NCBI GenBank assembly: GCA_002269645.1
Contig: NIVC01003276.1
Span: 1 to 64,000, forward strand
Direction of reading: 5' to 3'
DNA length: 64,000 bases
From: Macrostomum lignano
Lineage: Eukaryota
Shown here: in pieces, positions 10,483-63,933 of the stretch
How positions within the stretch are numbered: position 1 is the stretch's first letter
Layout of the letters: the number at the start of each line of letters is the position of its first letter
The notes under the pieces: generated by a model
What the model saw: only the letters and a program-made list of their open reading frames with translations
The model's database searches: none
Told to the model about the DNA's origin: nothing
Position numbers and translations under genes: made by a program

Positions 10483-10489
10483 ATGAAAG

Positions 10490-20103: not shown

Positions 20104-20297
20104 TGTTATGACTTCTTCTCTAGCGGAAGACAGTGAGTCAAGATCAACAAGGTCAACTTAAAAGTTGCACTCTTAGCAGAGCGTCTTATTTCATGTTATC
20201 GTAACTTTTCTTTTTTTATTTCCAAGCTTGAAGTATTGCTTCTTTAGCTCATGGCTGGGTGTGTGTGCGACTGGGTCGTCTATGGCCACACCCAACA
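20104..20297 (-). mobile_element. 5' LTR of the Gypsy element (194 bp)
   Basis: TGTT...AACA termini, directly upstream of the PBS on the minus strand. The far boundary is inferred because no second copy was found. Confidence 0.65.
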
Positions 20298-20298
20298 G

Positions 20299-20646
20299 TC
20301 ACCGCAACGATCCAACCCAGTCAAGGTCCCATTTCATCGTACTACACACCTGCGTACAGGTGTATAGTGAAAAACACAGCCCTCCAAGTTGAGCATCTGG
20401 AAACTGCTGTCTGACAGCTCGCCAAGCTGCGGCCTCGAAATCCATGACAACAGCTGTAGGTTGTGCATGTGGCACAAGACTGCGGAAAGCAGCGAGCAAC
20501 AAGCATTTGTTTGTTTTACTATAGTAAAACAACAGTTTAAAATCGGAGTAAACATGCGAATGTGGTAGGCGAAGACCTCCCACGGGTTGTAACTCATTTT
20601 CCGCCGCGCGATTTTGCTCATCCGTAAATTGTGCCATTGACGTCAT
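20299..20646 (-). mobile_element. MULE (Mutator-like) transposase fragment
   Basis: PTAVVMDFEAAAWRAVRQQFPDAQL + GCVFHYT (DFE...FP...GCxFH motif across a frameshift); it stops at the LTR edge. Confidence 0.75.
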
Positions 20647-23600: not shown

Positions 23601-23883
23601 ATCAAATCGGGATGCCACCCTCAGTTAGTGGAGAATGTTTAAGATATTTCTGCAGCATCCGATCTGGGGTGGCACAGGGGTGGCTCATTAAAAAAGGTAT
23701 CTCGTGATTTCTTAGAAAATAAAAACACAAAAACATGTATTTTATGTTACATTTTTGCTAACAGTGATTTTTGCAGTCACAATTTGTTAGTCACAATCTA
23801 GTTATTGTAATTATTTTCACCCTAGCTGACCGCTATATTAGAGCTGTCAAATCTCTCCCATCGCCCGCAGCCCAGCTGTCATC

Positions 23884-26530: not shown

Positions 26531-26644
26531 CTCAACCTTATCAATTAGTTTATTTTGCTTTTTTGGTTATTTTTTGTTTTTTATTTGTTCAATTTGCTGT
26601 CGGTTTGTCCCGTTTTGCTGATTTGAGATTGAGGGGGTAAGAGA

Positions 26645-35500: not shown

Positions 35501-35893
35501 GCCCTCTCTAGACACTACCCGCCCACTCTAGACACTACCCGCCCACTCTAGGCACTACCCACCCTCTCTAGACACTATCCGCCCTCTCTAGACACTATCC
35601 GCCCACTCTAGACACTATCCGCCCACTCTAGACACTATCCGCCCACTCTAGACACTATCCGCCCACTAAAGGCACTACCCGCCCTCTCTAGACACTATCC
35701 GCCCACTCTAGACACTATCCGCCCTCTCTAGACACTACCCGCCCTCTCTAGACACTACCCGCCCACTCTAGGCACTACCCGCCCTCTGTAGACACTACCC
35801 GCCCTCTCTAGACACTACCCGCCCACTCTAGGCACTACCCGCCCTCTGTAGACACTACCCGCCCACTCTAGGCACTACCCGCCCTCTCTAGAC
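29518..35893. repeat. 20-bp satellite (about 6.4 kb) with higher-order blocks
   Basis: Unit ctagacacta(c/t)ccgccc(a/t)ct; rare variants recur in a conserved order. Confidence 0.98.
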
Positions 35894-44098: not shown

Positions 44099-47000
44099 TC
44101 AGGTAGCATAGTGATCAAATGAGGACAGGTACTCCAAGGCTGCTCCATAGCAGAATTGGTATTGCTCATCAGTTTGCACCATTGCTGAGCGCTGTGTTCG
44201 CAGTGTCCTCACAGTCTGGTACATGTCTACCACGCCTTCGTAGCGCATTCGTTCCAGGACCACGGAGAGGGCCAGAAAGACACCTGTGCGGCCCACGCCA
44301 GCGCTGCGGGTGGAGGGTCAAATCTTCAACGACTGAGGGACCGAATTTTTGATGACCGGGGGACGAATCTTTGATGACTGAGGGACGAATCTTTGATGAC
44401 TGAGGGACGAATCTTTGATGACTGAGGGACGAATCTTTGATGACTGAGGGACGAATCTTAGAGAATCTTAGGGACGAATCTTAGGGACGAATCTTAGGGA
44501 CGAATCTTAGATCTTCAATGACTGAGGGACAAACATCAAATGACTGAATCTACCATGACTGAGGGACAAACCTCAAATGACTGAATCTACCATGACTGAG
44601 GGACAAACCTCAAATGACTGAATCTACCATGACTGAGGGACAAACATCAAATGACTGAATCTTCAATGACTGAGGGACAAACCTCAAATGACTGAATCTA
44701 CCATGACTGAGGGACAAACCTCAAATGACTTAATCTTCAGTGACTGAGGGACAAACATCAAATGACTGAATCTTCAATGACTGAGGGACAAACATCAAAT
44801 GACTGAATCTACCATGACTGAGGGACAAACCTCAAATGACTGAATCTACCATGACTGAGGGACAAACCTCAAATGACTGAATCTACCATGACTGAGGGAC
44901 AAACCTCAAATGACTGAATCTTCAATGACTGAGGGACAAACCTCAAATGACTGAATCTACCATGACTGAGGGACAAACCTCAAATGACTGAATCTTCAAT
45001 GACTGAGGGACAAACCTCAAATGACTGAATCTACCATGACTGAGGGACAAACATCAAATGACTGAATCTACCATGACTGAGGGACAAACCTCAAATGACT
45101 GAATCTTCAATGATTTTTGGTGCCTGGGGGATGAATCTGCAATGGCTGATGACTGAGTAATGAATTTTGCTAACAATGCTGAGCAGAGAACGCAAAGCTC
45201 ACCTGCAGTGCACTGTGATCGGCCCATCCTGCCCAAACTGCTCCTTGGTCTTGTGCACCTGGCCGATGAATTCGATGAAGCCTTCCCCGGACTTTGGCAC
45301 ACCCTGCTCTGGCCAGTCGGTGCAGTGGAACTGGCGCACCGTTCTGGACTGGCCGTCCCTGGCGTCGGTGACCTTGAACTCTCGAAGAATATAGTTGGGC
45401 ATGTTGTACTCGGCCATGGGGTCAACCACAAAGTATTGGTAGCGGGCCGACCGCTCGCCAGGCCAATACTGGTGACACTTATCCCGACCTTGCTCACGCA
45501 GCTTGGTGAGGTTCACCACAATGGTGGAGTTGTGCTCCCACAGCATGCGCCAGAAGTCCTCGGCGGTGTCCGGCAGCGGTCCCTGGGTGGCGATGTAGCA
45601 GGACCGCTGTCTGTAGCCGTCGATCCAGGAGGCATTGATGTAGTCAGAGCCTTCGACGCCGCGTATCGGCTGCAGACAGACTCGATTGGATTCGAATGGC
45701 AGAATGTTGACCAGGCGATTCTTCAGCTTGTTGGCTGGCAGGCTGGCGCTGGTGAACTTGTGCGCCGGGGTCGGCTTGACCGTGTGCGCCAGGCTGCGGA
45801 ACTCCAGCTCCATGCCGGTGGCGCCTCCGGCTGCGGGCTCCGGGATGCTCAGCCGCTGCACCTGGGAGGCGAGGGCTCGGGCCGGCACCTGTTGGGAGAG
45901 GTTAAGGAGCTGCTGCATTTTGATGCGGTCCAGTTGGTGTGTTTTGATGCGGTACAGTTTGTGCATTTTGATGCGGTCCAGTTGGTGTGTTTTGATGCGG
46001 TCCAGTTTGTGCATTTTGATGCGGTCCAGTTGGTGCATTTAATGCGGTCCAGTTTGCTTTTTTTCAATGCGGTCCAGTTTGTGTTTTTTGATGCGGTCCA
46101 GTTTGTGTTTTTTTATCGGGTCCAGTTTGTGCATTTTGATGCGGTCCAGTTGGTGTGTTTTGATGCGGTCCAGTTTGTGCATTTTGATGCGGTCCAGTTG
46201 GTGCATTTAATGCGGTCCAGTTTGCTTTTTTTCAATGCGGTCTAGTTTGTGTGCTTTGATGCGGTCCAGTTTGTGTGCTTTGATGCGGTCCAGTTTGAAT
46301 GTTTTGATTGGGTCCAGTTTGTGTGTTTTTATGCGGTCCAGTTTGAATGTTTTGATCGGGTCCAGTTTGTGTGTTTTTATGCGGTCCAGTTTGAATGTTT
46401 TGATTGGGTCCAGTTTGTGTGTTTTTATGCGGTCCAGTTTGAATGTTTTGATCGGGTCCAGTTTGTGTGCTTTGATGCGGTCCAGTTAGTATTTTCGAGT
46501 TGGAATGTTGGTTACAAGTTTTTAGGACGTTGTGTTTTATACAGTTTTTCATGACTACTGATACATGAAAACATAAGTAGCATAGTTTAATCTAATTTCT
46601 CACCTCGGTATTGCCGCAAATGACCGCCTCTAACAGACAGTCGTGAATGAAGATGTACTGGTCCTCAGTCTGCACCATGTAGTTCCGCTGCGCCCGAAGG
46701 CAGGTCACGTGACCGTACACGTCCAGCGTCTTCTCCTGCTTCATCCGTTCGAGCATCGCATCAATGACGATGAAGGCCCCAGTGCGGCCGACGCCGGCGC
46801 TGCAGTGAACCACAATGGGCCCGGCGTCGGGCGGGTTGGAGGCGCGCACCCGGCGGGCGAACATGAGCAGCGGAGCGCAGTGCTCGGGCACGCCGTGGTC
46901 CGGCCAGGCCGTGAACTGGAAGTGGTGGATCTCGCGCTTCTCGGTGGCGCCCTGCGGCGGGTTTGAGGTGAGGAACTTGATGAGGCCGGGGGATTAAGGA

Positions 47001-50000
47001 TGCTGAGTAATGTGGCTTGGGATTCTGCAGTTTAAGGATGAAGATTCTGTAGTTTAAGGATGAGGATTCTGTAGTTTGAGGATGAGGATTCTGTAGTTTG
47101 AGGATGAGGATTCTGTAGTTTGAGGATGAGGATTCTGTAGTTTGAGGATGACAGTTCTGTAGTTTAAGGATGAGGATTCTGTAGTTTAAGAATGAGGATT
47201 CTGTAGTTTAAGGATGAGGATTCTGAGGATTCTGCAATTACAGTGCACACCTGCCTCATCATCCATCCAGCTCAGGCGCTAGTTGAGACTAGACTGTCAT
47301 TAGCTAGTAAATTGCCTACAGTTTTGGGAGCTTTGTGCCCCTTAGAAGACTCTGGCTACTTGAGAACTCGCGAGCCTCTTTGTCTTATCCGGCCGACTCG
47401 GCTTAGGTTTCAAGTCTCCAACCCCCCCCCCTGGCCTCCCCTCTCTTGTCCAGGCACAGAGGGACAACGGGCGAGTGCCTCGACTTGAAGAGGAGTCCCT
47501 CTCCGAGAAGTCTCCTGCTCTCTCTCCTAGGAGGGATCCGCGCTCTCGAAGATGAGACGCTGGACTTGGCGAAAGATCGAGAGGAAGCTAAAGGTTTTTT
47601 TGGGATCTTTCGTAGGGAGGAAAAATCCCCTAATTTCGGATCTGCTCCTGCCCTCACCCTTCTCCCAGCCTCCAGAAGCCAGGCTGTGTAGCCAAACAGA
47701 CCGGCTACATCCGGGATGGATCGGCAGCTGCTTTTCCAGCTCAAATTACCGGGGCGGGCAAGTCTGCTTTTGCTGAGAAATGAATTTTTCTTGGGGGGGG
47801 ATTTCCTGCTTTCGGGCATCGCGGCTGCTGAGAAGAATTAAATTGACACTGAAATCGCAGCGCTTCTTTCCCTCTGCCATCGATTTGCTGCTGGGAAATC
47901 AATGCTGCATTGTGTGCGGTGCTGAAATTCTAGCGGATTGAGGCTAACTGATTGCAGGGCTCTGGCAAAGGCCGCAAGGGACCGTCTAACAGGTATTTAG
48001 GGACTGTCTAACAGGTATCACGGAACTGTCTAACAGGTATCATGATACTCAAGCAGCTCACCGCTCTATGCAGAGCAAAGGTGCGAATAGTGTAATAAGC
48101 CAGCTCCAGGGTGTCCAACAAGCTGACTGTCATGTAGTCGAACACCTCAGAGCCCTTGTTAGGCCAGTACATGTCGCACTTGACCCGCGACCGCTCCTCC
48201 AGCCGGGTCATCATCACCACAGTGCTGGTCTTCTGCTCCCAGATCATTCGCCAGAAATCTCCGATAGTGTCTGGCAGGGGGCCCTGGGTTGCTATGTAGG
48301 CATTCTGCCGCCTGTAGCCGTCCATGTAGTTGGCGTTGATGTAGTCACTGCCCGGCAGGCCGTCCAGCGGCTGCAGCACCACCCGGGAGTGATCGTAGGC
48401 GATCACGTTGGCGTAGCGGTTCTTCGGCTTATTGACGTCTAGATTGGAGTTCTCCCAGGTGAACTGCTGTCCTGGGTCGATGGACTCGTATTCAGCTGAG
48501 AACTTCAGGTTGTCGCTGGCCTTCAGGCTGGCCACGTGGTCGATCAGCTGGGCGACTGGCACCGGAGGGTGACTTGTGAGAGCTGGATCGAAGTTTGTGG
48601 GTGTTGAAATAAAAGTTCAACATCCGAGGTGAGTCAGCAATCAATGAAAAGTTCATCATCCGAGATGAGTAACCAATCAATGAAAAGTTAATCATCCGAA
48701 ATGAGTCACCAATCAATGAAAAGTTAATCATCCGAAATGAGTCACCAATCAATGAAAAGTTCACCATCCGAGGTCGTGAGTCACCAATCAATGAAAAGTT
48801 CATCATCCGAGGTCGTGAGTCACCAATCAATGAAAAGTTCACCATCCGAGGTCGTGAGTCACCAATCAATGAAAAGTTCATCATCCGAAATGAGTCACCA
48901 ATCAATGAAAAGTTCATCATCCGAGGTCGTGAGTCACCAATCAATGAAAAGTTCATCATCCGAAATGAGTCACCAATCAATGAAAAGTTCATCATCCGAA
49001 ATGAGTCACCAATCAATGAAAAGTTCATCATCCGAAATGAGTCACCAATCAATGAAAAGTTCATCATCCGAAATGAGTCACCAATCAATGAAAAGTTCTT
49101 CATCCGAAATGAGTCACCAATCAATGAAAAGTTCATCATCCGAAATGAGTCACCAATCAATGAAAAGTTCATCATCCGAAATGAGTCACCAATCAATGAA
49201 AAGTTCATCATCCGAAATGAGTCACCAATCAATGAAAAGTTCATCATCCGAGGTCGTGAGTCACCAATCAATGAAAAGTTCATCATCCGAGGTCGTGAGT
49301 CACCAATCAATGAAAAGTTCATCATCCGAGGTCGTGAGTCACCAATCAATGAAAAGTTCATCATCCGAAATGAGTCACCAATCAATGAAAAGTTCATCAT
49401 CCGAAATGAGTCACCAATCAATGAAAAGTTCATCATCCGAAATGAGTCACCAACCAATGAAAAGTTCATCATCCGAAATGAGTCACCAATTAATGAAAAG
49501 TTCATCATCCGAGGTCGTGAGTCACCAATCAATGAAACGTTCATCATCCGAGGTCGTGAGTCACCAATCAATGAAACGTTCATCATCCGAGGTCGTGAGT
49601 CACCAATCAATGAAACGTTCATCATTCGAGGTCATTCGAGAGTCACTAATAAAAAATTAAGTCACACGGCATGCTGACCGCTCGTGAAAACAGCTTATTT
49701 TTCTTAGAAAGCAGTCTAGAATCTGCAGCCGAAATGCTTGATGCTGCACTATTAAACTTACATGCAGTCTTCGTGCATTTTGGTCATACCAAACTATAAG
49801 TATATAGTTTAGAGTCATTCCACTTTCGCAACTCTTAAAGGCGCGCATCTTTACTGCAACCACGGAGCTTAGCTAATATTCCAAGAAACGCCAAGATTTT
49901 GCTTGCAACAGGTAAATTAAAACAAATCGGTTTTGGCACTAACCAGGATTTTCAGTTTCCGAGGCTGAAAATTTGGTAGCTTTATTTTATCATTGCGTAT

Positions 50001-53000
50001 CGGGCTTCTCATATGGTCTGATGTAATTGAAAATACTTTCATATGGTTTCCACCTGAGTCATCACCCATCTGAATCATTCCCCACCTGAATCATTCCCCA
50101 ACCTCAATCATTCCCAACCTGAATCATTCCCAACCTGAATCATTCCCAACCTGAATCGTTCCCCACCTGAATCATTCCCAACCTGAATCATTCCCAACCT
50201 GAATCATTCCCAACCTGAATCATTCCCCACCTGAATCCTTCCCACCCTGAATCATTCCCAGCCTCACCTGGCGTCTGGAAATTGATCCGCCTCAGCTCCA
50301 CCGGGTCTGTCGGTCCCTGATGAAATGCCGCGGAGCTGCTGGCCGAGCGAATAGACAATGTTGGCAGGGTGCCAACGTGACTGGACGACTGCAGAGTGCC
50401 AAACTGCTGTTGCTGCTGTTGCTGCTGCTGCTGTTGTCGCTGCAAGGTGGCGGAGCCAACTACCGACTGCAGTGTTCCTCCAGTGGCCGCAGTAGCGCAG
50501 AAGCTGGTGGAATTCTGTTGTGACGCCGGGATCAGCGGCTGCTTGAGAGACGGCTCGACCAGCACCTGCATTGGCTGCCGGTTGTTTGAGTGGCCGCCAG
50601 ACCCGTTGCGGAAGTTCCGACCCCGCTCTGTGCCTTTCCTGAGGGGAGGGGGAGAGAGGGTACGGAGGCGACAGTGACTTTGGTGATGAGGGAGATGAGA
50701 GAGATGAAGGAGATGAGGGAGATGAAGAAGATGAGGGAGATGAGGGAGATGAGAGAGATGAGGGAGATGAGGGAGATGAGAGAGATGAGGGAGATGAGAG
50801 AGATGAAGGAGATGAGGGAGATGACGGAGATGACGGAGATGACTGAAATGAGAGAGATGAAGGAGATGAAGGAGATGAGGGAGATGAGGGTGATGAGGGA
50901 GATGAGAGAGATGAAGGAGATGAGGGAGATGAGGGAGATGAGGGAGATGAGGAGATGAGGGAGATGAGGGAGATGAGGGAGATGAGGGTGATGAGGGAGA
51001 TGAGGGTGATGAAGGAGATGAGGGAGATGAAGAAGATGAGGGAGATGAGAGAGATGAGGGAGATGAGGGAGATGAGGGAGATGAGAGAAATGAGGGAGAT
51101 GGGGAGATGAAGGAGATGAAGGAGATGAGGGAGATGAGGGAGATGACGGAGATGACGGAAATGAGAGAGATGAAGATGAAGGAGATGAGGGAGATGAGGG
51201 TGATGAGGGAGATGAGGGTGATGAGGGAGATGAGAGAGATGGGAGAGATGAAGAAGATGAGGGAGGTGAGGGAGATGAGAGAGATGAGGGAGATGAGGGA
51301 GATGAGAGAGATGAGGGAGATGAGGGAGATGAGAGAGATGAAGGAGATGAAGGAGATGAGGGAGATGAGAGAGATGAGAGAGATGAAGGAGATGAGGGTG
51401 ATGAGGGAGATGAGGGAGATGACAGAGATGACAGAGATGAAGGAGATGAAGGAGATGAGGGAGATGAAGGAGATGAGGGAGATGAAGGAGATAAGGGAGA
51501 TGATGGAGATAAGAGAGATGAAGGAGATGAGGGTGATGAGGGAGATAAGGGAGATGAGAGAGATGACAGAGATGAAGGAGATGAAGGAGATGAGGGAGAT
51601 GAAGGAGATGAGGGAGATGAAGGAGATAAGGGAGATGAAGGAGATAAGGGAGATGAGGGAGATGAGGGAGATGAGGGAGATGAGGGAGATGAGAGAGATG
51701 AGGGAGATGGGGAGATGAGGGAGATGAGGGAGATGAGAGAGATGAGGGAGATGGGGAGATGAGGGAGATGAGGGAGATGAGAGAGATGAGGGAGATGAGG
51801 GAGATGAGAGAGATGAGGGAGATGGGGAGATGAGGGAGATGAGGGAGATGAGAGAGATGAGGGAGATGGGGAGATGAGGGAGATGAGGGAGATAAATGTA
51901 AGATCAGGAAATCAGCGGGAGATGAGAACAGCAGAGCAAAAGAGAGAGACCTAATGCCAAACGCAGGTCATCCTTCTCAACCATTAAAAAGTTATTTATC
52001 ATTTTAATTTTCATTAGCTACGCTGTGTAAATTTGCTGATCCGAATCGAACTGAATATTCAAAACAGTTGTCAATGCCTTGGGTAGAAAAGTGGGACCAA
52101 AAATTATTCTCAACTTCCTCTCTGGAAAAAGTTTCGTTCTGCTGAGCTTAGCTGCATGTCGAGCGGCAATTTTATGAGCTTAGCGCAGAACGCGGGCGGT
52201 GCAGAGTTTACTGCGGGGGATGGCAACTAAACATGCTGACTCGCTACTACAGACCAGCCGGTGCTTAGCCGAAGATAATTGATGGCTGCTAACCCGCTTT
52301 CGGGAGTAGCAGCCGGCACTTCGGGTGCGGCGGAGAAAGCCGCTTGAAAGAGGAGGGGAGTGAGGAGAGGAGAAAAGAGAAGAGGAGAGGGGTGGAGAGA
52401 AGAGAAGAGAAGAGGAGAGAAGAGGAGAGGAGAGGAGAGAAGAGGAGAGGAGAGGAGAGGAGAGGAGAGGAGAGGAGAGGAGAGGAGAGGAGAGGAGAGG
52501 AGAGGAGAAAAGAGGAGAGAAGAGGAGAGAAGAGAAGAGAGAAGAGAAGAGGAGAGAAGAGGAGAGGAGAGGAGAGGAGAGGAGAGGAGAGGAAAGGAGA
52601 GGAGAGGAGAGAAGAGAAGAGAAGAGAAGAGAAGAGGAGAGAAGAGAAGAGGAGAGAAGAGGAGAGAAGAGGAGAGTAGAGAAGAGGAGAGAAGAGAAGA
52701 GGAGAGAAGAGGAGAGGAAAGAAGAGGAGAGAAGAGGAGAGGAGAGGAGAGGAGACGAAGGGAGGGGAGATGAGACAAGAAAGGAGGAATAGATATGGAC
52801 AAAAGGCACAGCGAGCCAATTTGCAAGCGCACGCCAACAGGCTCATAAAAGTACAGATGCTCAGCCAATTACCTGCCGCAGACAAAGCAGCCCAGCGCAA
52901 TGCAGCCAACGCTGATGCAGACGACAGCCGTCAGGCCCAGAGCTGACGTCACCAGCACGACGATCAGGGTGAAGTAGCCGCTCTCCGCGGTGCCCAAGCT

Positions 53001-56000
53001 TCGGCTTGGCAGTGCAATGTGGGTGCCGAAGGCCTCCGACCAGGGACTGTAGGAGCAGCCGGCGCCCACCAGGCTGCCGACTGGGCCCGAACCGGCCGGG
53101 CTGAGGCAGGCCGCGAGAAATGACTGCAAGAATGATTCAGGTAGGGAATGATTCAGGTGGGGAATGATTCAGATGGGGAATGATTCGGGTGGGGAATGAT
53201 TCAGGTGGGGAATGATTCAGGTGGGAAATGATTCGGGTGGGGAATGATTCAGGTGGGGAATGATTCAGGTGGGAAATGATTCGGGTGGGGAATGATTCAG
53301 GTGGGGAATGATTCAGATGGGGAATGATTCGGGTGGGGAATGATTCAGGTGGGGAATGATTCAGGTGGGAAATGATTCAGGTGGGAAATGATTCAGGTGG
53401 GGAATGATTCAGGTGGGGAATGATTCAGGTGGGAAATGATTCAGGTGGGAAATGATTCAGGTGGGAAATGATTCAGGCAAGGAATGATTCAGGTTGGGGA
53501 ATGATTCGGTGGGAAATGATTCAGATGGGGAATCATAGCAGAAAGATAACACAGATAGGGAAAATGATCCCAACCTTGTAGGAAGCGTCGCTGAGCAGCG
53601 GTTTATTGAGCGCCTGCTGCCTGGAGTCGCAGGTCTCGGTGGGCAGCTTGGTTCCCAGCTGGAACTCGATGTACCCGGCTGACTGAGGCGAGGACAGCTG
53701 GCGGAACCGCTGGGCGGTGAAGCAGGCGGCGATGTACGGCTCCTTGGAGCTGGCGATCCGAGCGTCGACGCTGACGGTCTCCAGGTCGCTGCGCTGGAAC
53801 AGGAGGTCCTGGCTAGTCGCCGACTGGGCTTCCGGGGCCACCACCAGCAGGTACCGCTGTACAACTCCCAGACGGTCGCTGGCTCGCCTCAGCCGCAGAG
53901 TGATGAGCCGGCGATCAACGTCCTTGTCGATGGCGATCGGCGCTTGGAGGCTGCGCGGCGGCGCGCTGGCGGTGGGGCAGGCCACCTCCGCCGAGGCCTC
54001 TCTGTTGGGAAACCTGCGGCACACCGTGAGAGAGAGAAATGACTTGAGACACCCTCGGGACACATGGCAACTGATTGAGTCTCATTGACAGGTGAGTCTT
54101 GAGACACCCTCGGGACACATGGCAACTGATTGAGTCTCACTGACAGGTGAGCTTTGAGACACCCTCGGGACACATGGCAACTGATTGAGTCTCATTGACA
54201 GGTGAGCCTTGAGACATCCTCGGGACACATGGCAACTGATTGAGTCTCATTGACAGGTTAGCCTTGAGACACCCTCGGGACACATGGCAACTGATTGAGT
54301 CTCATTGACAGGTGAGCTTTGAGACACCCTCGGGACACATGGCAACTGATTGAGTCTCATTGACAGGCGAGTCTTGAGACACCCTCGGGACACATGGCAA
54401 CTGATTGAGTCTCATTGACAGGCGAGTCTTGAGACACCCTCGGGACACATGGCAACTGATTGAGTCTCATTGACAGGTGAGCCTTGAGACACCCTCGGGA
54501 CACATGGCAACTGATTGAGTCTCATTGACAGGTGAGTCTTGAGACACCCTCGGGCCAAGGCCGCTGTACATCCTGCATGTGCTGAGGAGTCGGCGGAATG
54601 GGCAGAATTGCCTCTGCGCTGTTTGTTGAAAGATTTCGCGGAAGGCGTTGCGCCAGGGTGGCCTGTGAATATTTATTTTACATTTATTGATGCTCAAAGC
54701 CTCAGCACACCTGGCCGTCAGCCGAATTGTGTACAGCTTGTTGGGGTCCAGCCCCTTCAGCACGTGTTGAAACTCCGCGGGCTGAGCGTCCCAGCTGAGC
54801 GGCACCGGCATGACGGGACTCAAGCGCCTGGACCTCTGCTCCTGGCCGGAGTCGTCGATGAACCTGCCGGTGGCGGTGTAGTTGTACTCGAACGACTCCA
54901 AGCCGGCCGAGTCGTGCGGCCGAAGCCAGCGCAGGCCCAGACTGTCCGGCCGCCGGTCGAAACAGCGAAGCTCGCGCGGCGCCTCCCGGTTGAAGAGGCG
55001 CAGCAGGTGCGGCTCCGACACCGGGCCAACGGGGCTGCCATCTGCGCCGATCCACTGGAAGCGCAGCGTGTACTCGGCGCTGGAGTCCAGGTTCTCTAGA
55101 ATGAACGGCCTGTCAAGGACTCCGCCAGCTTGGAGCTGTTGAAATGCTTCAACTGGAGCGCCGGGGTCCGGGCTGAACAGGATGCGGAGATCGGCGATGG
55201 CGGATTGAGCGGCCGACACCGGCGGCTGCTGCGGCGGCGGCGGCGGCGGCAGCGACCAGTCGATTCGAGCGCGGGTCGGCGACACGCGACTGAGGACGAT
55301 GCCGGCTGGGGGCGACGGCGACTGGGGCGGCGGCTGCTGGCGGGTGCGCACCTGGGTAGGATTTTTATACGGTTTTTAGTTGAGTTAATCGATAAGTGGG
55401 GTGATAAGTGGGGAGGTGAGGGCGGAGAGGTGAGGTGAGAGCGGAGAGGTGAGAGGTAAGAGCGGAGAGGTGAGGTGAGGGCGGAGAGGTGAGGTGAGAG
55501 CGGAGAGGTGAGAGGTAAGAGCGGAGAGGTGAGGTGAGGGCGGAGAGGTGAGGTGAGAGCGGAGAGGTGAGGTGAGAGCGGAGAGGTGAGGTGAGAGCGG
55601 AGAGGTGAGGTGAGAGCGGAGAGGTGAGGTGAGGGCGGAGAGGTGAGGTGAGAGCGGAGAGGTGAGGTGAGAGGTGAGAGCGGAGAGGTGAGAGGTGAGA
55701 GCGGAGAGGTGAGAGGTAAGAGCGGAGAGGTGAGAGGTGAGAGCGGAGAGGTGAGAGGTGAGAGTGGAGAGGTGAGGTGAGAGCGGAGAGGTGAGAGGTA
55801 AGAGTGGAGAGGTGAGGTGAGAGCGGAGAGGTGAGAGGTAAGAGCGGAGAGGTGAGGTGAGAGCGGAGAGGTTTCAATGCAGAGCTAAGGAGCCGAAGTA
55901 AGAACAGCGCAAGCAGGCAGCAGCAGTGATGGACAGCGCTAAGGCGACGGCTGGCTCTCAAGTAGATGAGGCAGATAGCAGCAGGACCCACCCTTGTCCG

Positions 56001-59000
56001 CACAGTTCCCTTATAAATTGGCGTTGGCAAGGTAACCAGCAAGGAGAAGACAGAGAGGTAAACAAAGCAGATTGAAGTAGCCAAACAAGCATTGAGCTAG
56101 CTCGTAGTGTGAGTAGACGAGTGAGTGAGAAGTGAGGTGGAATGCCGGAGTGTGCATCATTATCAGTATCCATGCATCGGATAAGCAGCTAATAGAAGCA
56201 GTGAGATGCTGGGAGCAAATAACACAGCTGGTTGTTAAACAGCTAAGGGGGCCAATTATAATATTAAGAGGCCCATAAGTGCTTTTGCACTCCGGCGCTT
56301 GTGCGAAAGAGTCAATCAACCTACCAATCAATCAATCAACCTACCAATCAAAATCAGTTCACTCACCGGCATGACATCGGACCAGGGCCCCGGTCCCGCC
56401 GAGTTCCAGGCCCGCACCTTGAACAGGTACTCCCTGCTTGGGTTCAGGTGCCGGATGACGGCGCTGGAGTTTTCAACGCTGAAGTTCTTCGAGCCGTAAC
56501 CGTCTATGGCGTTTTTAGGCCAATAGGCGACCTCCGTGTTGGTGATATGCCCGTTCCGACCCGTTAAGATCGGCTTCAAAGCGAAAACTTCCACTGAAGT
56601 GTCCGACTTGGTGTTCACCGAGAATGACTCCGGCTTCATCGATGGGGCTGCTCGGAAATGACGGTGGGTTCGGCTTTCATTGGCAGCTGCGAAGCTTCCA
56701 AGGGAGCGGTTCTTCTCTCACTCCCTTCCCCCGATCCTTCAGTGGGATGTTACCTGCACTCCCCATCATTCAGTGGGATGTCACCTGCACTCCCCCATCC
56801 TTCAGTTGGATGTCACCTACACCCTCATCCTTCAGTGGGATGTCACTTACACCCTCATCCTTCAATGGGATGTCACCTGCACCCCCTTATCCTTCAGTGG
56901 GATGTCATCTACACCCTCATCCTTCAGTGGGATGTCAGCTGCACCCCTCGATCATTCAGTGGGGTGTCACATACACCCTCATCCTTCAGTGGGATGTCAG
57001 CTGCACCCCTCGATCATTCAGTGGGATGTCACATACACCCTCATCCTTCAGTGGGATTCACCTACACCCCATCCTTCAGTGGGATGTCACCTACACCCTC
57101 ATCCTTCAGTGGGATGTCACCTACACCCTCATCCTTCAGTGGGATTCACCTACACCCTCATCCTTCAGTGGGATGTCAGCTGCACCCCCCGATCATTCAG
57201 TGGGATGTCACCTGCACCTACTATCCTTTAGTGGGATTTTACCCGTTACCCTAATCATTCAGTAAGATGATGGAGAACACTGAACCGATTATATAACAAG
57301 CTCATGTCAATCAATCATTCTGGCACTCACGAGCCTCCCTAACGGTGGCCTGACAACTGATGACATCTCCGTAGCCTTCGTTATTCTTAGCGGACAGGCT
57401 GAAGTTGTACACGGCTCCGAACAGCACCTTATTGGGTGGCAGGGTCCACGAGGTTCGGCCGTGGCTTAGCGGCACCTCCGTGTAGGTCCTCGAGCTGACA
57501 AGGTCGGGCGGCCCGACGGCCCGGTAGAGCAGGCGGTATTCCTCGATGCGGGAGCCGCGCAGGGTGTCGGGTGCCAGCCAGTTCAGGTCGATGCTGGCCG
57601 ACCTCAAGCCGGGATCGTAGCGCACCGAGGCTTCGAATCGTTTCGGCGCCGAGGGCACTGAAATGCACGGAGCGTCGGTTCTGCTGCAGTCGAATTCTAT
57701 CGCGTAGATTGGCACCCTGTCTGCTTCTGCCGCAGCGGCTGCATTTGCTGCTAGAAGAAGCAAAGTCAGAACTGCTGCTTTAACCATTATTTCGGCGTTG
57801 GGTAATTTTGAGTTTTGAGTAAAATCTGTTCCACTTTCCTCTCTTTTAGCGAGGAAACATTTTTCTCTGTCGTTCTTCTTCTTCTTCTATTTTTACCCGT
57901 CGGCTTCTCATAAGATTTCTCCTCTCGTCTCCTCTCCTCTCATAGTCTGCTCTCCGCGGCTTGTCCCATTGGTGCTGTAATCCGAGGGTCGCCCCGACTC
58001 CCACTGCATCCGCCGCACACTGCGAGACCCAACCAGCCCTGCCCGCCTTTCCAGCCCAGCCCTCGTCTCTCTCTCTCTCTCATCTCTTACGAAGAGGAGG
58101 AGGCTGGGGAGGCTGGGAGGCTGGGGAGGCCTGGGAGGCTGGCAGGCAGACAGGGAGGCTGAAGCCACCCCGGCGTGACCGTTCCAACCCGTCTGCGCTG
58201 CAATCTATCAGCGTGCTGTGAGGGAGGGGGGGCAGTGGAGATCCACATCGGTAGTAAGCGAACTCCCAAGTAATCCGTTGCTCGAGTCTGTCTCAAAATA
58301 ATGTTATTTTGCACCTGCTTTTGGCCAGCCTATCCGCTTTGCTATTTATTCAATTATTCACCACAAGCTTGCTGTCTGTCTTGAGTGCAACCTTACCTCT
58401 AGCTAATCTAGGCCCATTGCACACCGCTCCCGCACTTTCCCCATGGCTGAACTGGCTTCATGTGTTTTTCCTGAGCATTAATAGGCTCAGGTAATGAGGC
58501 TCAGGACCTCTGATGATGGTGCAGGCTCGTCATCTCCTGCAGATTCTCTCCCTTTTTCTCACTACCTCACCCTCACCCTCTCTCCCTTTCTTTCCCTCTC
58601 TTCCTCCCTCTCCCTCTCTCTCCCTCTCTCCCCCTCTCTCTCTCTCTCCCTGTCTCACTCTCTCCTCTCACTCTCTCACTCTCTAACTCTCATTCTCACT
58701 CTCACTGTCTCACTCTCCCTCTATCACTCTCACTCTCTCTCCCTCTCTCCCTCACCCTCACTCACTCTCTCACTCTCTTTCCTTGTAACACTCTCTCTTC
58801 CTCTCTCTCCCTCACTCTGCCTCTCTCTCCCTCTCTCCCTCTCTCCCTCTCTCCCTCTCTCCCTCTCTCCCTCTCTCCCCCTCTCCCCCTCTCTCCCTCT
58901 CTCTGTCTCACTCTCTCCTCACTCTCTCTCTCTCTCACTCTCTCCTCACTCTCTCTCTCACTCTCTCTCCTCTCTCTTCCTCTCACCCTCACTCTCTCAC

Positions 59001-62000
59001 TCTCTTTCCTTGTAACACTCTCTCTTCCTCTCTCTTCCTCTCTCCCTCACCCTCACTCTCTCACTCTCTCTCTCCTTCACTCTGACTCTCTGACTCTCTC
59101 TCACTCTCTCCATCTCTCTCTCACTCTCTCGTCTCACTTTCTCACTCAATCAGTCACACTCTCTCTTAGTCGCTGTCTTCCCCTTTCCTCGCTCACCCTC
59201 TCCTCTCCCCGTTGTCTCCTTTTTCAGTTTTAGTGAATTCCCTATATTACAAAAGTCTATGGACCCCCGATTTTCCAGTCCAGGTGTCTCCCTGGAGGAT
59301 GCTCCCTTATTTATTTCTTTACCATTTTTCTTGTCCCTTTAAAAACTAATAACACTAATAAAACTAATAACTAACAGTGCTGCATCATTCTAGCCAATAA
59401 TATTATCAGAGGACTTGCTAAACTGGTGCATACGCGGAACTGGAAGCCTTGCTTGTCTGTGAGAGAAAAGCTAAACCCTGGGTTGGTAGAGGCAGTAAAA
59501 GTATGAATATATGGCTAAAAGGCTGCAGCCCCTACCCCCCCCCCCTCTGTCGAGTGCTCGTGTCCAGTTTTTCGAACAAAGAAGCTGCACATTAAGCGCA
59601 GTAGTGTTCAAGTAGAAGTTTGGGAGAATATCCTATATAACTCTCTTCCCCCCTGTTCTGCCAGTTTAAATAACTGCCTGGAATATTAATGAGGCTTATT
59701 ATTATAACTAATGAATTAAAGTTATCAATTCCAGCGCAGAAAGGACCGGGTGTGACCAAGCGTGAACTAGGTATATAATAGATCGGTAGATGGGTGAAAT
59801 TTATTGATTAATTAATTCTCTATGCAAATTCTGCGCACTTGATTGACACCTGCATGGGCTAGATGGGAGCTAATCCCATTATAGATAAGGGTGATAATAT
59901 TTAATATGCTATGCAAGATTATCTAAACGTCTGGAAATTAGGCCCATGAGAAGTAGCCCATGTGAGGTAGACAGTAATGAGAAGTAGTCCATGTGAGGCA
60001 GGCAGTGACGAGAAGTAGCCTATGTGAGGTAGACTGAGATGAGAAGTAGCCCATGTTGAGGTAGGCTGAGATTAGAAGTAGCCCATATGAGGTAGACAGT
60101 GATGAGAAGTAGCCTATGTGAGGTAGACTGAGATGAGAAGTAGCCCATGTTGAGGTAGGCTGAGATTAGAAGTAGCCCATATGAGGTAGACAGTGATGAG
60201 AAGTAGCCTATGTGAGGTAGACTGAGATGAGAAGTAGCCCATGTTGAGGTAGGCTGAGATTAGAAGTAGCCCATATGAGGTAGACAGTGATGAGAAGTAG
60301 CCCATGTGAGGTAGACAGTGATGAGAAGTAGCCTATGTGAGGTAGACTGAGATGAGAAGTAGCCCATGTTGAGGTAGGCTGAGATTAGAAGTAGCCCATA
60401 TGAGGTAGACAGTGATGAGAAGTAGCCCATGTGAGGTAGGCTGAGATTAGAAGTAGCCCATATGAGGTAGACTGAGATGAGAAATAGCAAATGTGAGGTA
60501 GACTGAGATGAGAAGTAGCCCATGTGAGGTAGACAGTGACGAGAAGTAGCCCATGTGAGGTAGGCTGTGTGAGTTAGCCATATTTTCCCCAAAAACATGC
60601 TCAAAATGGACTACAGTACAGCGTCACAGGAATTATTCTCACTGACCCGAAGTTTTTACAGCCTTAACTATACTACAACTGTAGATTAAAGTTCTGTGCA
60701 TCTTCATAAGCCCAGAGGAATTGAAGCCAGCCCAAATCTCTCAGCCAAGGACCCCTGTAACCAGACCCGGCACTAGATTGGAATTGTGCAAGACGGACAC
60801 TTTACTTGTAAGACCTTATAGAGCTAGTAGAAGATGAAGGAAAGAAGGAGCATGATGCAGAATATCATGCAATAGTATCCGGGACTTTGCCTCATGCCCT
60901 GCATAAAGTTAGACATAGAAAAACTGCTGCTAAGGCCATGCCGACGATGAAGGAGGGAAGAAAGCGGATGCGGAGGCTGAGAGGGGAGCAAAAGCCGGCA
61001 ATTGCAAGTGTAGCATAAAGCCAAAATTGAGTAGGGCAGGATCGATGATAGAGAGTAGCTGCTTCCATGAGGCCTCCTAATTCCAGGGGGGGGGGGGCTT
61101 TGTCGGGACATCGGGACATACATTGATTACAGGGTTTTAGTTCTGCCTTGTGTCTGTAAGTCTCAATTCATTTCACTTCTCTAAGCTGGTCGTGCGTCCC
61201 ACGCTGCTTGCACGCATGGACTTCCATAGTTAGCGTCTGGACTGCTGGGAACTGCTGGCCGTTGGCATCCATAAAATGTATCTATGCAGCTTTGGAAAAT
61301 AGGAGTGATATTTGGAAAAGTAGAGGTGAGATTTGGATAAGTCGAAGTAAGATATGGTTAATTAGGGGTGAGATTTAAATAGTAAAGAGATTTGGATAAC
61401 TAGGAGTGAGATTAAGGTAAGTAGGGATAATATTTCAAGAAGTAGAGCCAGGTATGATCTGGATTAAATAGGATGAGAGTTTGCTAAGTAGGAGTAAGAT
61501 TAACAGAAGTAGGGATGAGACTTAGATAAGTAGGGGTGAGAATTGGATAAGCAGGATGAGAGTTGGATAAGTAGGGTGAGATTTGGAGAAGTAGGGGTGA
61601 GATTTGAATAGGTAGGGTGAGATTTGGATAAGTAGGATGAGATTTGGATAAGTAGGGTGAGATTTGGATAAGTAGGGTGATGTTTGGATAAGTAGGATGA
61701 GATTTGGATAATTTGGGGTGAGATTTACATAAATGAATGGGTGAGCTTCAAAGAGAAGGCAAAAAATGAGATTTAAGCCACAAAGGGTTAATAGCTTTGC
61801 GCTTACAAAACAATAAGATACACCTGCAAAGAAAAAACTCAAGGACAAGGTACTCACCAAGTCCCAGGGTGGTCACGGGCTCCCGGATGCTTTCGTAGCT
61901 GCTGACCCCGCCAGCCGGGCCGCTGGAGGCCGCCACTCCGATGTGGTAGGCCGTCTTGGGTTCCAGGCCGCTGATGACGTACCGATAGAAGCCCTGCTCG

Positions 62001-63933
62001 ACGAGGTTCGGCACCACCTTCTTGGTCTCCTCGGATGGCACCGCGGTGCCCATCGGGTCTGTGGCGCGGTAGTATCTCACCAGCCACTGCTGGATGCCTC
62101 TGGCCTCCAGCGGAGGCGACCAAGTCACCTCGATCTGCTGGCCCTGAAGCGCTCGGGCCTGCACGTTCACCGGCTTACCTGGCGCTGTTTTTGGGGATTT
62201 AAGGGAGAGTAAATTGCTATGGTAATTTTTAATATGTAGGCTGGGTGAAACTTTGTCGAAATGCCTTGCCCACATCACTCCCTCACCCACCTTACTCCTT
62301 CACTCACCTCACTCCCTCACCCACCTCACTCCTTCACCCACCTCACTCCTTCACCCACCTAACTCCTTCACCCACCTCACTCCCTCACCCACCTCACTCC
62401 TTCACCCACCTAACTCCTTCACCCACCTCACTCCTTCACCCACCTCACTCCTTCACCCACCTAACTCCTAACCTCACTCCTCCATCAACATCACTCCTCC
62501 ATCAACCTCACTCCATCCATCAACATCACTCTTCCATCAACATCACTCCTCCATCAACCTCACTCCTTCATCAGCCTCACTCCGCTACCTAGCTCACCCA
62601 TACACCAAACCCCACCTTCAAATGCTTTTGTTTAAGCAAACGCGAACACGAATAAACCAATCGATAGACTCTGACTAGAGTTTAGTAAAAGTTTCGCCGA
62701 GCAGAAAAATAAAACAATAATAACATTTCTTGTTAAAATAGTTTAAGAAAGGTCAAAACCTAAAAAAATCTAGTAAGATATTGCTAGTGAAGAATTCCAT
62801 CCGCTATGAACACGGGACAAAGTTAAACGTCAGCACATCAACTATAGGACCAGAACAATAGGAACTTATAAATATTGGGATAATACACAAAATACGCTGA
62901 ACCGTATAGGCCTTTTCTTCAAGGCTATCAAAACAAAAATATTGTGTAACTACATGTAGAGCTACAAAATGGCCACTTAGGCATATATACTTAGCAAAAC
63001 AGCTTTCTACTTACAGTTCAGTAGCAATGAAGAATACATAAAGCTATTTTATAAGAATAAAGGCAGCTGAAATGACTTTGATAAGTTTAGAAGCCCAAGC
63101 AGACGTAAACAGCTTGCTAATTGGTTCAGCCATAATGTACATTAGCCACTGCAATGTACATGGCAGATTTAGGCTGGAACAGCCGAGAAAGGCAATTAAA
63201 ATTGGGTGGCGGGGCAGGGGTAGAGGTTCCGTGTGGAGTTGAGAGTTTAAGCTCGGGGTGGGTAATAGCCAATAAATGAGCCTTGTCTTTAAAATACATT
63301 AAAATTCTTCAGTTAAACTTACTACTGAACTGAAAGTAGCTGACACGCAAATTTGCTGAGTGGCCTAGTGATCTAGTGATCTAGTATGTGTGTGTAACTA
63401 GGCATGTGCTTTTCCAACTGGTCAGGGAGTTCATTTTTTTAAGCCCTATATTCCCAATAATGAAGCAGGTATATCGAGAAAGAAATGCTCTAAAATAATT
63501 AAATTTCATCCTCCAGTACCAGTGGTCTAAGCGATGTACACTACACAGACTGCATGTACATTGTCTCGAAACACGCGTAAGGGCTGCTCTGATTGGCTGA
63601 GCTCTGACAGACCTGAGACCAGCGTCCGAAAGCGCACGGGCCCGGAGGCGACCCCCTGGCCAACAGCAGTTCTGGCGCTCAGCCAGGCCTCATAGCCTGT
63701 CAGAGGCGCCAATGGCGCTAGATTAGCGCATCTGGATTCGGCGCTGACATTTAAAATGCCGCCAAAAAGGACGCCAAGACGAGTGTCGCTATTGCTTAGC
63801 AACGGTTGCCAGGCTACAGTGTAGCCAAGGAGGCGGCCATTCCAGTTGCGCCTTGGTGGTGGCTGCCAGCAGAGGCTGGCCATGCGGCTGTCAATGTAGC
63901 CGACCTTCACCGATGCCGGAGGCGCGCTGGGGG
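44099..63933 (-). CDS. Lar: LAR-family (type IIa) receptor protein tyrosine phosphatase, 5' partial. Exons 63933-63613, 62184-61858, 57657-57331, 56647-56367, 55351-54711, 54013-53575, 53123-52873 (TM), 50638-50268, 48582-48062, 46951-46604, 45888-45203, 44303-44099
   Basis: FN3 repeats, TM helix, [18 protein letters not shown]1 [42 protein letters not shown] / WPDHG / [11 protein letters not shown]2 [11 protein letters not shown] / WPEQG / [10 protein letters not shown]. All 11 introns are GT-AG with consistent phases. Confidence 0.96.
44330..45112. repeat. Compound intronic minisatellite (22-, 13- and 37-bp units)
   Basis: gactgagggacgaatctttgat; ttagggacgaatc; gactgagggacaaacctcaaatgactgaatctaccat. 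Confidence 0.9.
45918..46487. repeat. 21-22 bp intronic minisatellite
   Basis: tttgatgcggtccagtttgtg variants. Confidence 0.9.
47030..47235. repeat. 22-bp intronic minisatellite
   Basis: aggatgaggattctgtagttt(a/g). Confidence 0.9.
48625..49630. repeat. 36/39-bp intronic minisatellite
   Basis: atcatccgaaatgagtcaccaatcaatgaaaagttc. Confidence 0.95.
50066..50260. repeat. 16-bp minisatellite, inverted partner of 53128-53535
   Basis: (cccacctgaatcattc)n on the plus strand. Confidence 0.92.
50686..51893. repeat. 9-bp purine-rich minisatellite
   Basis: (gagatgagg)n. Confidence 0.95.
52347..52770. repeat. GAGAG/GAGAA low-complexity array
   Basis: Direct reading. Confidence 0.92.
53128..53535. 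repeat. 16-bp minisatellite, inverted partner of 50066-50260
   Basis: (gaatgattcaggtggg)n on the plus strand. Confidence 0.93.
54043..54553. repeat. 55-bp intronic tandem repeat, about 9 copies
   Basis: gacaggtgagtcttgagacaccctcgggacacatggcaactgattgagtctcatt. Confidence 0.95.
55415..55872. repeat. 19-21 bp purine-rich minisatellite
   Basis: gaggtgaggtgagagcgga variants. Confidence 0.9.
56725..57235. repeat. About 30-bp intronic minisatellite
   Basis: atccttcagtgggatgtcacctacaccctc. Confidence 0.9.
57331..57787 (-). CDS. Putative alternative first coding exon of a short LAR isoform with its own signal peptide
   Basis: aaataATGG then [21 protein letters not shown]..., open and in frame through the internal acceptor at 57657. 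Confidence 0.6.
57968..57995 (-). promoter_or_regulatory. Possible internal promoter elements (CCAAT and GC-box-like) upstream of the alternative ATG
   Basis: attgg 57968-57972 and cgcccc 57990-57995, about 180-210 nt upstream of 57787. Short motifs, weak evidence alone. Confidence 0.3.
58550..59200. repeat. CT/CACT low-complexity tract
   Basis: Direct reading. Confidence 0.9.
59946..60565. repeat. 31-bp minisatellite with a 94-bp trimeric higher-order unit
   Basis: gagaagtagcccatgtgaggtagacagtgat; a 31+32+31 block repeats near 60010, 60104 and 60198. Confidence 0.88.
61300..61725. repeat. Degenerate 20-21 bp minisatellite
   Basis: gagatttggataagtagggt. Confidence 0.8.
62272..62580. repeat. 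17-bp minisatellite
   Basis: cactccttcacccacct, grading into ccatcaacatcactcct. Confidence 0.88.

Follow-up and report, generated by a model that had tools for sequence, protein, structure and literature searches.

A putative intron-derived first exon for a short, Ig-less LAR receptor phosphatase in Macrostomum lignano

The window analysed here, the whole stretch of 64,000 nucleotides at positions 1 to 64,000 of Macrostomum lignano contig NIVC01003276.1, carries on its minus strand a LAR receptor phosphatase gene in which the exon for FN3 domain 5 (FN5) appears to serve two purposes. In the long isoform the FN5 exon is internal; in a putative short isoform it would make up the 3' portion of a first coding exon, extended upstream by 130 nt of intron that reads as 43 codons and begins with a signal-peptide-like sequence. 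We hold with moderate confidence that this is a young alternative first exon that would give rise to a short LAR similar to C. elegans PTP-3B. The preliminary description of this DNA, which had proposed a short isoform from an internal promoter, is partly supported.

Gene identity and the two deposited forms

The gene belongs to the type IIa (LAR) class of receptor protein tyrosine phosphatases. Its D1 exon matches PTPRS structures in the PDB with E = 3.5e-131 and PTPRF/LAR structures with E = 1e-130, the best matches being PTPRS, PTPRF and LAR, and other RPTP types score far worse. The deposited protein PAA52253.1 contains two Y_phosphatase stretches by Pfam, the tandem D1-D2, in agreement with the LAR-type identity proposed earlier. 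The exons that bear on the two forms are arranged as follows, in the order of transcription:

61858..62184, minus strand: FN4 exon of the long isoform, 100% identical to PAA94881.1 residues 624-731
57658..61857, minus strand: FN4-FN5 intron, 4200 nt, with donor G/GTGAGT at 61858/61857 and acceptor at 57657
57331..57657, minus strand: FN5 exon (FN3 domain 5; Pfam fn3), phase 1-1, equal to residues 732-840 of PAA94881.1
56647-56367, minus strand: FN6 exon (Pfam), common to both isoforms
55351-54711, minus strand: FN7-8 exon (Pfam), common to both isoforms
54013-53575 and 53123-52873, minus strand: exons of the membrane-proximal region and the transmembrane segment (TM call), common to both isoforms
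50638-50268, minus strand: juxtamembrane exon, common to both isoforms
48582-48062 and 46951-46604, minus strand: D1 exons (Pfam/PDB), common to both isoforms
45888-45203 and 44303-44099, minus strand: D2 and stop exons (Pfam), common to both isoforms

The long form, PAA94881.1 (2088 aa), is annotated at a paralogous locus. It has I-set/Ig_3 and fn3 matches, and exon mapping resolves it into 3 Ig and 8 FN3 domains with a transmembrane segment at 1343-1378. At the FN4/FN5 junction it reads ...VTTLGL/VPSAPKRF, joining the FN4 exon (62184..61858) to position 57657; the acceptor described earlier as internal is indeed used as such. That acceptor has the sequence tttcag/TG, with 57657 as the first exon base, exactly as had been stated, and is in phase 1. 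The FN4 exon ends in phase 1 with a G, which combines with TG to give Val at the junction, and the FN5 exon, flanked by a GTGAGT donor directly after 57331, is in phase 1 at both ends.

The short receptor form is already deposited in GenBank. PAA52253.1 (BOX15_Mlig026250g3, 1399 aa) begins with exactly the extension peptide and is reproduced without error by joining a first coding exon at 57787-57331 to nine exons within 44099..56647, every intron being bounded by AG/GT. It consists of the 43-residue extension followed by the counterpart of PAA94881.1 residues 732-2088 (1356 versus 1357 aa). The Ig domains and the N-terminal FN3 domains are absent, and the proximal fn3 matches, the transmembrane segment (654-689) and two phosphatase domains are kept; the four FN3 domains, transmembrane segment, D1 and D2 expected downstream of the acceptor are thus all present by Pfam and transmembrane calls. 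No mention of Mlig026250 was found in paper texts or supplements.

The annotation behind these models was built from assembled RNA-seq transcripts, including multi-mapping reads, with ORFs called by TransDecoder and transcription units cut at spliced-leader (SL) sites by TBONE. Because PAA52253.1 is an exact splice of the window and the annotation is transcript-based, the assembled transcripts must include one that runs unbroken across 57658-57787. A start inside the gene from an independent promoter would account for the deposited transcript-derived CDS, which begins at 57787; the same pipeline also gives truncated models. The sister-locus model P0001 is clearly 5'-truncated, starting at an internal Met of FN8. 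At the window locus no gene is called within 10 kb upstream of ATG 57787, and the upstream FN3 and FN4 exons are intact yet unannotated, the FN4 exon falling outside the annotated gene model, so the transcript unit there is incomplete. These features favour an explanation in which no short protein exists, the 130 nt being plain intron and the 1399-aa model the product of a 5'-incomplete or intron-retaining assembly. Such a model could have arisen if the assembly broke at the upstream satellites, reads multi-mapped among three near-identical loci, and TransDecoder took the first in-frame ATG; the annotation did rely on multi-mapping reads and ORF calling, and TransDecoder would pick ATG 57787 from any fragment retaining the intron. 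We consider this explanation, the main rival, somewhat unlikely, and the evidence on its two sides is taken up below.

The extension and its signal-peptide layout

The 130-nt extension is the 3'-terminal end of the 4200-nt FN4-FN5 intron. The frame upstream of the 57657 acceptor is open for 76 codons, as far as an in-frame TAG at 57889-57887, and its first ATG, at 57787, stands in a strong start context (aaataATGg, with A at -3 and G at +4). From this ATG the extension runs in frame for 43 codons to the acceptor, bearing out the open frame reported at first, and reads on into VPSAPKRF..., the start of FN3 domain 5. Two parts can be distinguished:

57728..57787, minus strand: putative cleavable signal peptide, codons 1-20 (ORF, hydropathy heuristic, permutation and shuffle nulls)
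57658..57727, minus strand: isoform-specific N-terminal linker, codons 21-43, with two Cys, C34 and C41 (ORF); it also contains the signals for splicing at 57657, with AG at 57659-57658

The first part has a lysine at position 3, a hydrophobic core (best 10-residue hydropathy of the extension, 2.79), and small residues with an Ala run before E21. By our heuristic it combines the features of a Sec-type signal, namely a positively charged n-region, a hydrophobic stretch of 7-15 residues without interruption, small residues at positions -3 and -1 and a location near the N-terminus. The layout of basic residue, hydrophobic core and small residues pointed out in the preliminary description goes well beyond composition-matched controls in its n/h/c arrangement, and codons 1-20 make a convincing predicted signal peptide.

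An open frame of this length before an acceptor is not unusual, an in-frame upstream ATG being found at 4 of the 17 acceptors mapped for the long gene. The signal-peptide-like arrangement before the FN5 acceptor is unusual. Hydropathy of the four ATG-bearing extensions is 2.79 for FN5 versus 0.71, 0.25 and -1.04 for the others, and the FN5 extension is the sole hydrophobic or signal-peptide-like one among the 17. Among ~423 control ORFs (ATG-ORFs of at least 43 codons from the window and two sister loci), the heuristic was passed by the FN5 extension and one other (~0.3%); 1.2% of codon permutations of the extension and 0.1% of stop-free dinucleotide shuffles passed as well. If the 130 nt are plain intron, this look would have come about by chance, helped by a pyrimidine tract that yields Leu and a GCA repeat that yields Ala; the rarity of the layout among the nulls, the control ORFs and the acceptors (1/17) argues against it.

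Codon usage, divergence and the upstream stretch

The codon usage of the extension is intron-like and unlike that of every part of the gene. Its GC3 is 0.44, versus 0.78 for the gene; the canonical signal-peptide exon has 0.83 and the neighbouring gene 0.63-0.74. Stop-free intronic windows have a median codon log-likelihood equal to that of the extension, and every 43-codon CDS window scores higher. When the peptide was recoded with the gene's codon usage, a score as low was obtained in 0 of 20,000 trials, the synonymous usage falling short of the gene's by 6 SD. Of the 12 Ala codons, 7 are GCA, versus 6.9% in the gene (p = 4e-6). The intron-median score and low GC3 count in favour of the plain-intron explanation. 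For a functional exon, they suggest recent recruitment from the intron in place of an ancient origin, with a GCA-rich repeat and a pyrimidine tract as the probable raw material.

Codon usage is uneven along the extension, the first 22 codons having a GC3 of 0.23 and the last 21 (codons 23-43) a GC3 of 0.67 with a borderline coding score (0.09-0.16). A near-coding 3' half beside a 5' half that is not would fit a long isoform in which the FN5 exon is alternatively extended at its 5' end. A phase-1 acceptor, ttctgactttgcttcttctag/CA, with a branch-like CTGAC and a pyrimidine tract, would place the exon start at 57750 and, with the FN4 donor, insert 31 residues in frame between FN4 and FN5, site and phase both being computed from the sequence; small alternative inserts are typical of LAR family genes. 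Four database proteins span the junction (PAA94881.1, which is P0002, and P0004, P0005 and P0007), all without the insert; the deposited PAA52253.1 uses the ATG instead, and the 57750 site is a consensus match only. We regard this arrangement as most improbable.

Divergence among gene copies was compared for the window and the two sister loci, which differ from one another by only 2-3%, too little to test constraint. The extension ORF is intact in all three copies. Its two differences, A4T and T37A, are both non-synonymous, as the plain-intron explanation would have it, whereas the shared CDS shows 24 synonymous versus 10-14 non-synonymous differences and the FN5 exon 6 versus 1. Two differences in 130 nt compare with about 4 expected, which is not significant, and the divergence of the extension and of the sequence upstream is indistinguishable from that of unique intron, again in line with plain intron.

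Conservation of the extension outside M. lignano, which had been put forward as a check, was not found by word search or HMMER, and this too favours plain intron. A word-indexed homology search with the extension and the FN5 exon returned nothing at E <= 1e-3; the database is clustered at 90%, and a representative lacking the region stands in for the other members of its cluster. With an 884-aa spliced query the M. lignano cluster alone came back, low-complexity words having filled the candidate list. With HMMER, nothing among 1.84 billion representatives aligned to residues 1-30; the matches were generic FN3 domains of ~30% identity, nearly all of them beginning no earlier than query residue 31. 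Public assemblies had no exact match on record for the unspliced ORF of 158 aa. The two protein searches and the intron-like codon usage offer no sign of orthology between this first exon and those of other species. Signal peptides diverge fast, so a missing homologue weakens the case for an inherited exon and leaves intact the case for a receptor that works like PTP-3B.

The sequence immediately upstream of the ATG is a candidate site for a start of transcription:

57788..58098, minus strand: candidate promoter and 5' UTR, satellite-free (tandem-repeat map and motif positions)

The nearest tandem array lies 441 nt upstream of the 57657 acceptor, as opposed to 6-86 nt at the gene's other ten acceptors in the window, and, as remarked earlier, it is the one acceptor with no satellite next to it. 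The plain-intron explanation leaves these 441 satellite-free nt at a single acceptor unaccounted for. The stretch contains a TATA-like TAAAAAT at 57895, a 4-codon uORF with its ATG at 57860, a CCAAT at 57972 (185 nt upstream of ATG 57787) and a GGCGGG at 58047; exact GGGCGG or CCGCCC is absent from 58300-57658. The CCAAT and GC-box-like words noted at the outset are therefore present, but CCAAT/ATTGG occurs about twice per kb across the whole window, which puts these words at chance level; they were dropped as evidence and lend the internal promoter proposed at the outset no support. The stretch diverges from the sister loci by 3.0%, no differently from unique intron elsewhere, so the candidate promoter shows no extra conservation; a promoter function of 57788..58098 is inferred. 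An Rfam scan of the window gave no RNA family above threshold, so an intronic snoRNA does not account for the unique stretch; a sub-threshold miRNA-like match near 58.1 kb had E = 0.16.

The 5' end of a short mRNA might also be formed by spliced-leader trans-splicing at an acceptor in the intron, 5' of the ATG (e.g. TTACAG ending at 57975), instead of depending solely on a capped internal start. In M. lignano ~30% of genes are trans-spliced, at acceptors with the motif [T/C]TNCAG (PMC8629364); YTNCAG words occur upstream of the ATG at 57980, 58164 and 58203, and TBONE splits transcription units at SL sites. Such words are frequent, though, and the upstream cis donor at 61858 would normally compete with the spliced leader unless there were a separate internal start; we judge this route very unlikely. 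Trans-splicing directly onto 57657 was rejected, because an SL-terminal ATG joined to TGCCC... is out of frame and meets a stop after 18 codons.

Under the young-first-exon reading, the FN5 exon would be a hybrid exon. The long isoform (3 Ig, 8 FN3, transmembrane segment, D1-D2; 2088 aa) would be made by splicing the FN4 donor at 61858 to the acceptor at 57657. A second transcript would have its 5' end formed, by transcription or otherwise, within the preceding intron, somewhere in the satellite-free 58098-57788, and would read through the 57657 acceptor unspliced. Translation would start at ATG 57787, and the first ~20 residues would be cleaved as a signal peptide. The product would be a 1399-aa type I membrane protein that begins with a 23-residue tag bearing two cysteines and continues with FN5-FN8, the membrane-proximal region, the transmembrane segment, D1 and D2. 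Lacking the Ig domains and FN1-4, it would keep its intracellular output (e.g. liprin-alpha binding) and lose the domains that bind proteoglycans and synaptic partners in the LAR family.

Relation to known short forms and significance

An Ig-less LAR from an internal start is not new in kind. The C. elegans gene ptp-3 produces PTP-3B, with 5 FN3 domains and D1-D2, no Ig, and an independent promoter (PMC4418752). Both it and the M. lignano form are type IIa RPTPs that lack the Ig and N-terminal FN3 domains and keep the membrane-proximal FN3 domains, transmembrane segment, D1 and D2. PTP-3B originates within the gene and not by cassette splicing (PMC4418752; PMC7281833), as the M. lignano form would. 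The FN3 count differs slightly, PTP-3B having 5 and the M. lignano form 4 that are detectable by Pfam plus a membrane-proximal module. That the start site falls at the ectodomain position of the known C. elegans short isoform is a further point against plain intron. The evidence behind the two is of different kinds: PTP-3B is backed by Northern blots, reporters, isoform-specific mutants and rescue, the M. lignano form by a transcript-derived model and sequence statistics. The comparison is one of architecture; the first-exon peptide resembles no protein in two database searches, and an exon that looks this young, if real, is likelier to have replaced an older start or to be convergent than to be inherited. 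A narrower version holds the exon to be a lineage-specific newborn, its GCA-rich repeat and pyrimidine tract encoding an Ala/Leu signal peptide in phase with FN5 and re-creating or replacing the start of an Ig-less LAR isoform in flatworms; we offer it tentatively.

In vertebrates, PMC4418752 cites a human PTPRF short form (UniProt H0Y4H1) with 5 FN3 and two phosphatase domains and no Ig, which is alike in its Ig-less architecture and is an entry of uncertain biological status. Vertebrate LAR-RPTPs share ectodomain isoform diversity (mini-exons meA-meD, FN4-7 skipping), but those isoforms retain the canonical signal peptide and the Ig domains, altering inserts or dropping internal FN3 domains without acquiring a new N-terminus. 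Hybrid first/internal exons have one exon body with an acceptor that either receives an upstream donor or is read through from an intronic start. Compared with typical cases, the M. lignano 5' extension faces a stricter demand, having to add a start codon and a signal peptide in phase.

If the short form is an artefact, PAA52253.1 and the sister-locus PAA78987.1 are truncated versions of the 2088-aa gene. If it is real, nematodes and possibly vertebrates would be joined by M. lignano as a third lineage that makes an Ig-less LAR from within the gene, and the short form would look recurrent or ancient in the LAR family. In C. elegans the short form has a role in morphogenesis and axon guidance, not at synapses, and transgenesis and RNAi exist for M. 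lignano, which makes isoform-specific tests feasible. A real short form would also provide a small, clear case of a signal peptide and first exon arising from intron repeats and, should the newborn-exon reading be true, of a de novo signal peptide from an intron, convergent with nematodes and possibly vertebrates.

Gene layout and the annotated short form

The phosphatase exons of the minus-strand gene match structures of PTPRS, PTPRF and LAR with E about 1e-130, other receptor phosphatase types matching far worse, and every feature tested that defines the type IIa RPTP family was found; the gene is a member of that family. Deposited M. lignano proteins form a cluster, among them:

PAA94881.1 (P0002, Mlig026250g1), contig NIVC01000001.1: long form, 2088 aa
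PAA52253.1 (P0003, Mlig026250g3), the window's contig NIVC01003276.1: short form, 1399 aa
PAA78987.1 (P0001, g5), third contig, sister locus L003 at 10001-24478: 973 aa

The long-form ectodomain consists of three Ig domains followed by eight FN3 domains. Two exons matter here:

62184..61858, minus strand: FN4 exon, ending G|GTGAGT in phase 1
57657..57331, minus strand: FN5 exon, a Pfam FN3 domain (fifth in the series of eight, at long-form residues 732-840); acceptor tttcag|TG, donor C|GTGAGT, phase 1 at both ends

Because the FN4 exon ends in phase 1, the long form joins FN4 to FN5 in frame across an intron of 4200 nt. The frame 5' of the 57657 acceptor is open for 76 codons, bounded by a TAG at 57889-57887, and its first in-frame ATG lies at 57787, with A at -3 and G at +4. 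The 43 codons of this extension reproduce exactly the peptide of the preliminary description. When translated from 57787, ten exons of the window, all bounded by AG/GT, give PAA52253.1 residue for residue, so the annotated CDS of this locus already is the short isoform proposed earlier. Its expected layout, lacking the N-terminal ectodomain and retaining about four FN3 domains, the transmembrane segment and D1-D2, is that of this CDS, which contains FN5-FN8 and the membrane-proximal module. GenBank lists the ORF as a hypothetical protein.

The FN4 exon has tandem acceptors 6 nt apart (62184 / 62178, minus strand; acag|CGCCAG|GT), and both products occur among deposited proteins, as ...DFTPGKPV (P0002, P0007) and ...DFSKPV (P0004, P0005). 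Between the exons for FN3 and FN4, the intron contains an additional well-formed FN3 exon at 63933-63613 (minus strand, 321 nt, phase 1-1; acceptor aaacag|, donor |GTCTGT; Pfam fn3 E = 2e-9; GC3 0.66), missing from all deposited proteins. Sister locus L002 has it intact, and the differences there divide evenly into 7 synonymous and 7 non-synonymous; an alternative cassette exon and an exon in decay are both conceivable.

The three gene copies are related as a mosaic (64000-59059 versus 58700-57300, compared with L002 and L003): 5' of about 59 kb, the window shares 98.6-100% identity with L003 but is about 2.5% diverged from L002; downstream, starting at about 58.6 kb, L002 and L003 agree almost completely at variable sites and both differ from the window. 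The pattern suggests that the copies have recombined or undergone gene conversion, or that the assembly is chimeric. The window also contains:

191-4163, plus strand: Helitron-like element; its ORFs, split over several frames, carry Rep/Helitron_like_N and PIF1 helicase domains
16152-20054, minus strand: LTR-retrotransposon-like pol/gag region, probably degenerate; aspartyl protease, reverse transcriptase, RNase H and integrase-like ORFs in several frames
23884-24417, plus strand: neighbouring gene, ORF with a Voldacs (ICln-type) domain
26641-28864 and 40095-41778: further large satellite arrays
29518-35893: 6.4-kb satellite, 320 copies of the 20-nt unit ACTACCCGCCCACTCTAGAC, with strong strand asymmetry (GC skew about -0.59)
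36145-38637, minus strand: neighbouring kinesin-motor gene (859-aa model); it directly follows the phosphatase gene at each of the three loci

A signal-peptide-like extension at a satellite-free acceptor

Signal-peptide likeness was scored by a simple heuristic demanding a positive n-region, an uncharged 10-residue window near the N-terminus with mean hydropathy >= 2.4, and small residues at -3/-1. The extension passes, and the long form's canonical signal peptide passes too. The window and the two sister loci together contain about 423 ATG-initiated ORFs of 43 codons or more, of which only one other passes. An in-frame upstream ATG is present at 4 of the 17 mapped acceptors of the long gene, and the peptide is hydrophobic at 57657 only (2.79 versus 0.71, 0.25 and -1.04). 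Composition does not explain the result: permuting the extension's codons yields a signal-peptide-like order in 1.2% of trials, and dinucleotide-preserving shuffles in 0.1% of stop-free cases. The extension peptide, described earlier as a signal peptide, resembles one far beyond chance, at a biologically sensible position.

The acceptor itself was rightly singled out: 441 nt of unique sequence lie 5' of 57657, whereas the gene's remaining acceptors in the window all have a minisatellite array beginning 6-86 nt upstream. Across 44100-62600, such arrays are present in 10 of 11 introns, each starting at that short distance; their periods are 5-55 nt, they reach 1.2 kb, the unit differs in each, and short introns consist almost wholly of satellite.

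Coding signature and the origin of the extension

The extension DNA is unlike long-standing coding sequence of the LAR gene. Its GC3 is 0.44 (0.23 in the first 22 codons), below every equal-length window of the 2042-codon CDS. The gene as a whole stands at 0.78, its canonical signal-peptide exon at 0.83 and the neighbouring kinesin gene at 0.63-0.74. A codon log-likelihood score contrasting CDS with unique intron gives -0.49 bits per codon, a value equal to the median for stop-free intronic windows and under all CDS windows. With amino acids held fixed, synonymous choices fall about 6 SD under expectation (0 of 20,000 simulations as low), and GCA supplies 7 of 12 Ala codons versus 6.9% in the gene (p = 4e-6).

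The copies diverge by only 2-3% in this region, and the ORF is intact in all three. Its two differences are both non-synonymous (A4T, T37A), as against synonymous to non-synonymous counts of 6 to 1 in the FN5 exon and 24 to 10-14 in shared CDS. Sequence 5' of the ATG diverges by 3.0%, much as other unique intron does (2.5-4.8%). Neither of two very large collections yielded a protein that aligns to the signal-peptide part, and the CCAAT and GC-like words cited upstream of the ATG occur at chance frequency.

These properties favour the main rival, under which the extension would be nothing but intron and the deposited model an artefact of calling ORFs on an assembly that was truncated or had retained the intron. 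Transcript assemblies (StringTie, de novo and TACO) underlie the annotation; they were split at trans-splice and poly(A) signals before TransDecoder ORF calling (PMC5730564). PAA78987.1 begins at a Met within FN8, even though L003 has exons FN5 and FN6, together with the same extension, further upstream; this model is truncated, and the pipeline therefore does emit 5'-truncated ORFs. At the window locus the FN3 and FN4 exons are intact yet unannotated, so the PAA52253.1 transcript unit either truly starts internally or was assembled incompletely. Against an artefact stand the rarity of the signal-peptide layout in controls, the satellite-free acceptor and a position paralleling that of C. elegans PTP-3B, and we regard it as less likely. 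We lean towards a genuine, evolutionarily young alternative first exon, since this reading fits two strong signals that pull in opposite directions, the signal-peptide likeness and the DNA unlike long-standing coding sequence; an intronic GCA-rich repeat and pyrimidine tract would have been recruited as first exon of a short LAR.

Two minor variants are unlikely. The 5' end of the short mRNA might be formed by spliced-leader trans-splicing; a leader joined straight to 57657 can be dismissed as a productive route, since the ATG at its end would be out of frame. Alternatively, the long form might gain 31 residues through use of a phase-1 acceptor at 57751. A consensus-like 3' splice site (CTGAC, pyrimidine tract, AG) lies at 57771-57750 (minus strand), within the putative signal-peptide coding part, and is phase-compatible with the FN4 donor. 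Its pyrimidine tract encodes the hydrophobic core of the putative signal peptide.

Relation to known short LAR isoforms

We found no publication discussing LAR isoforms in Macrostomum. In C. elegans, ptp-3 produces three transcripts, each with an independent promoter, and PTP-3B, which has no Ig domains, carries five FN3 domains and D1-D2, a layout shared by a human PTPRF entry (PMC4418752). The evidence does not support membership in the PTP-3B type by descent, through inheritance of an orthologous first exon. The flatworm short form, with FN5-FN8 and the membrane-proximal module, would have a closely similar layout and, as known here from gene model and sequence, would work like PTP-3B in architecture.
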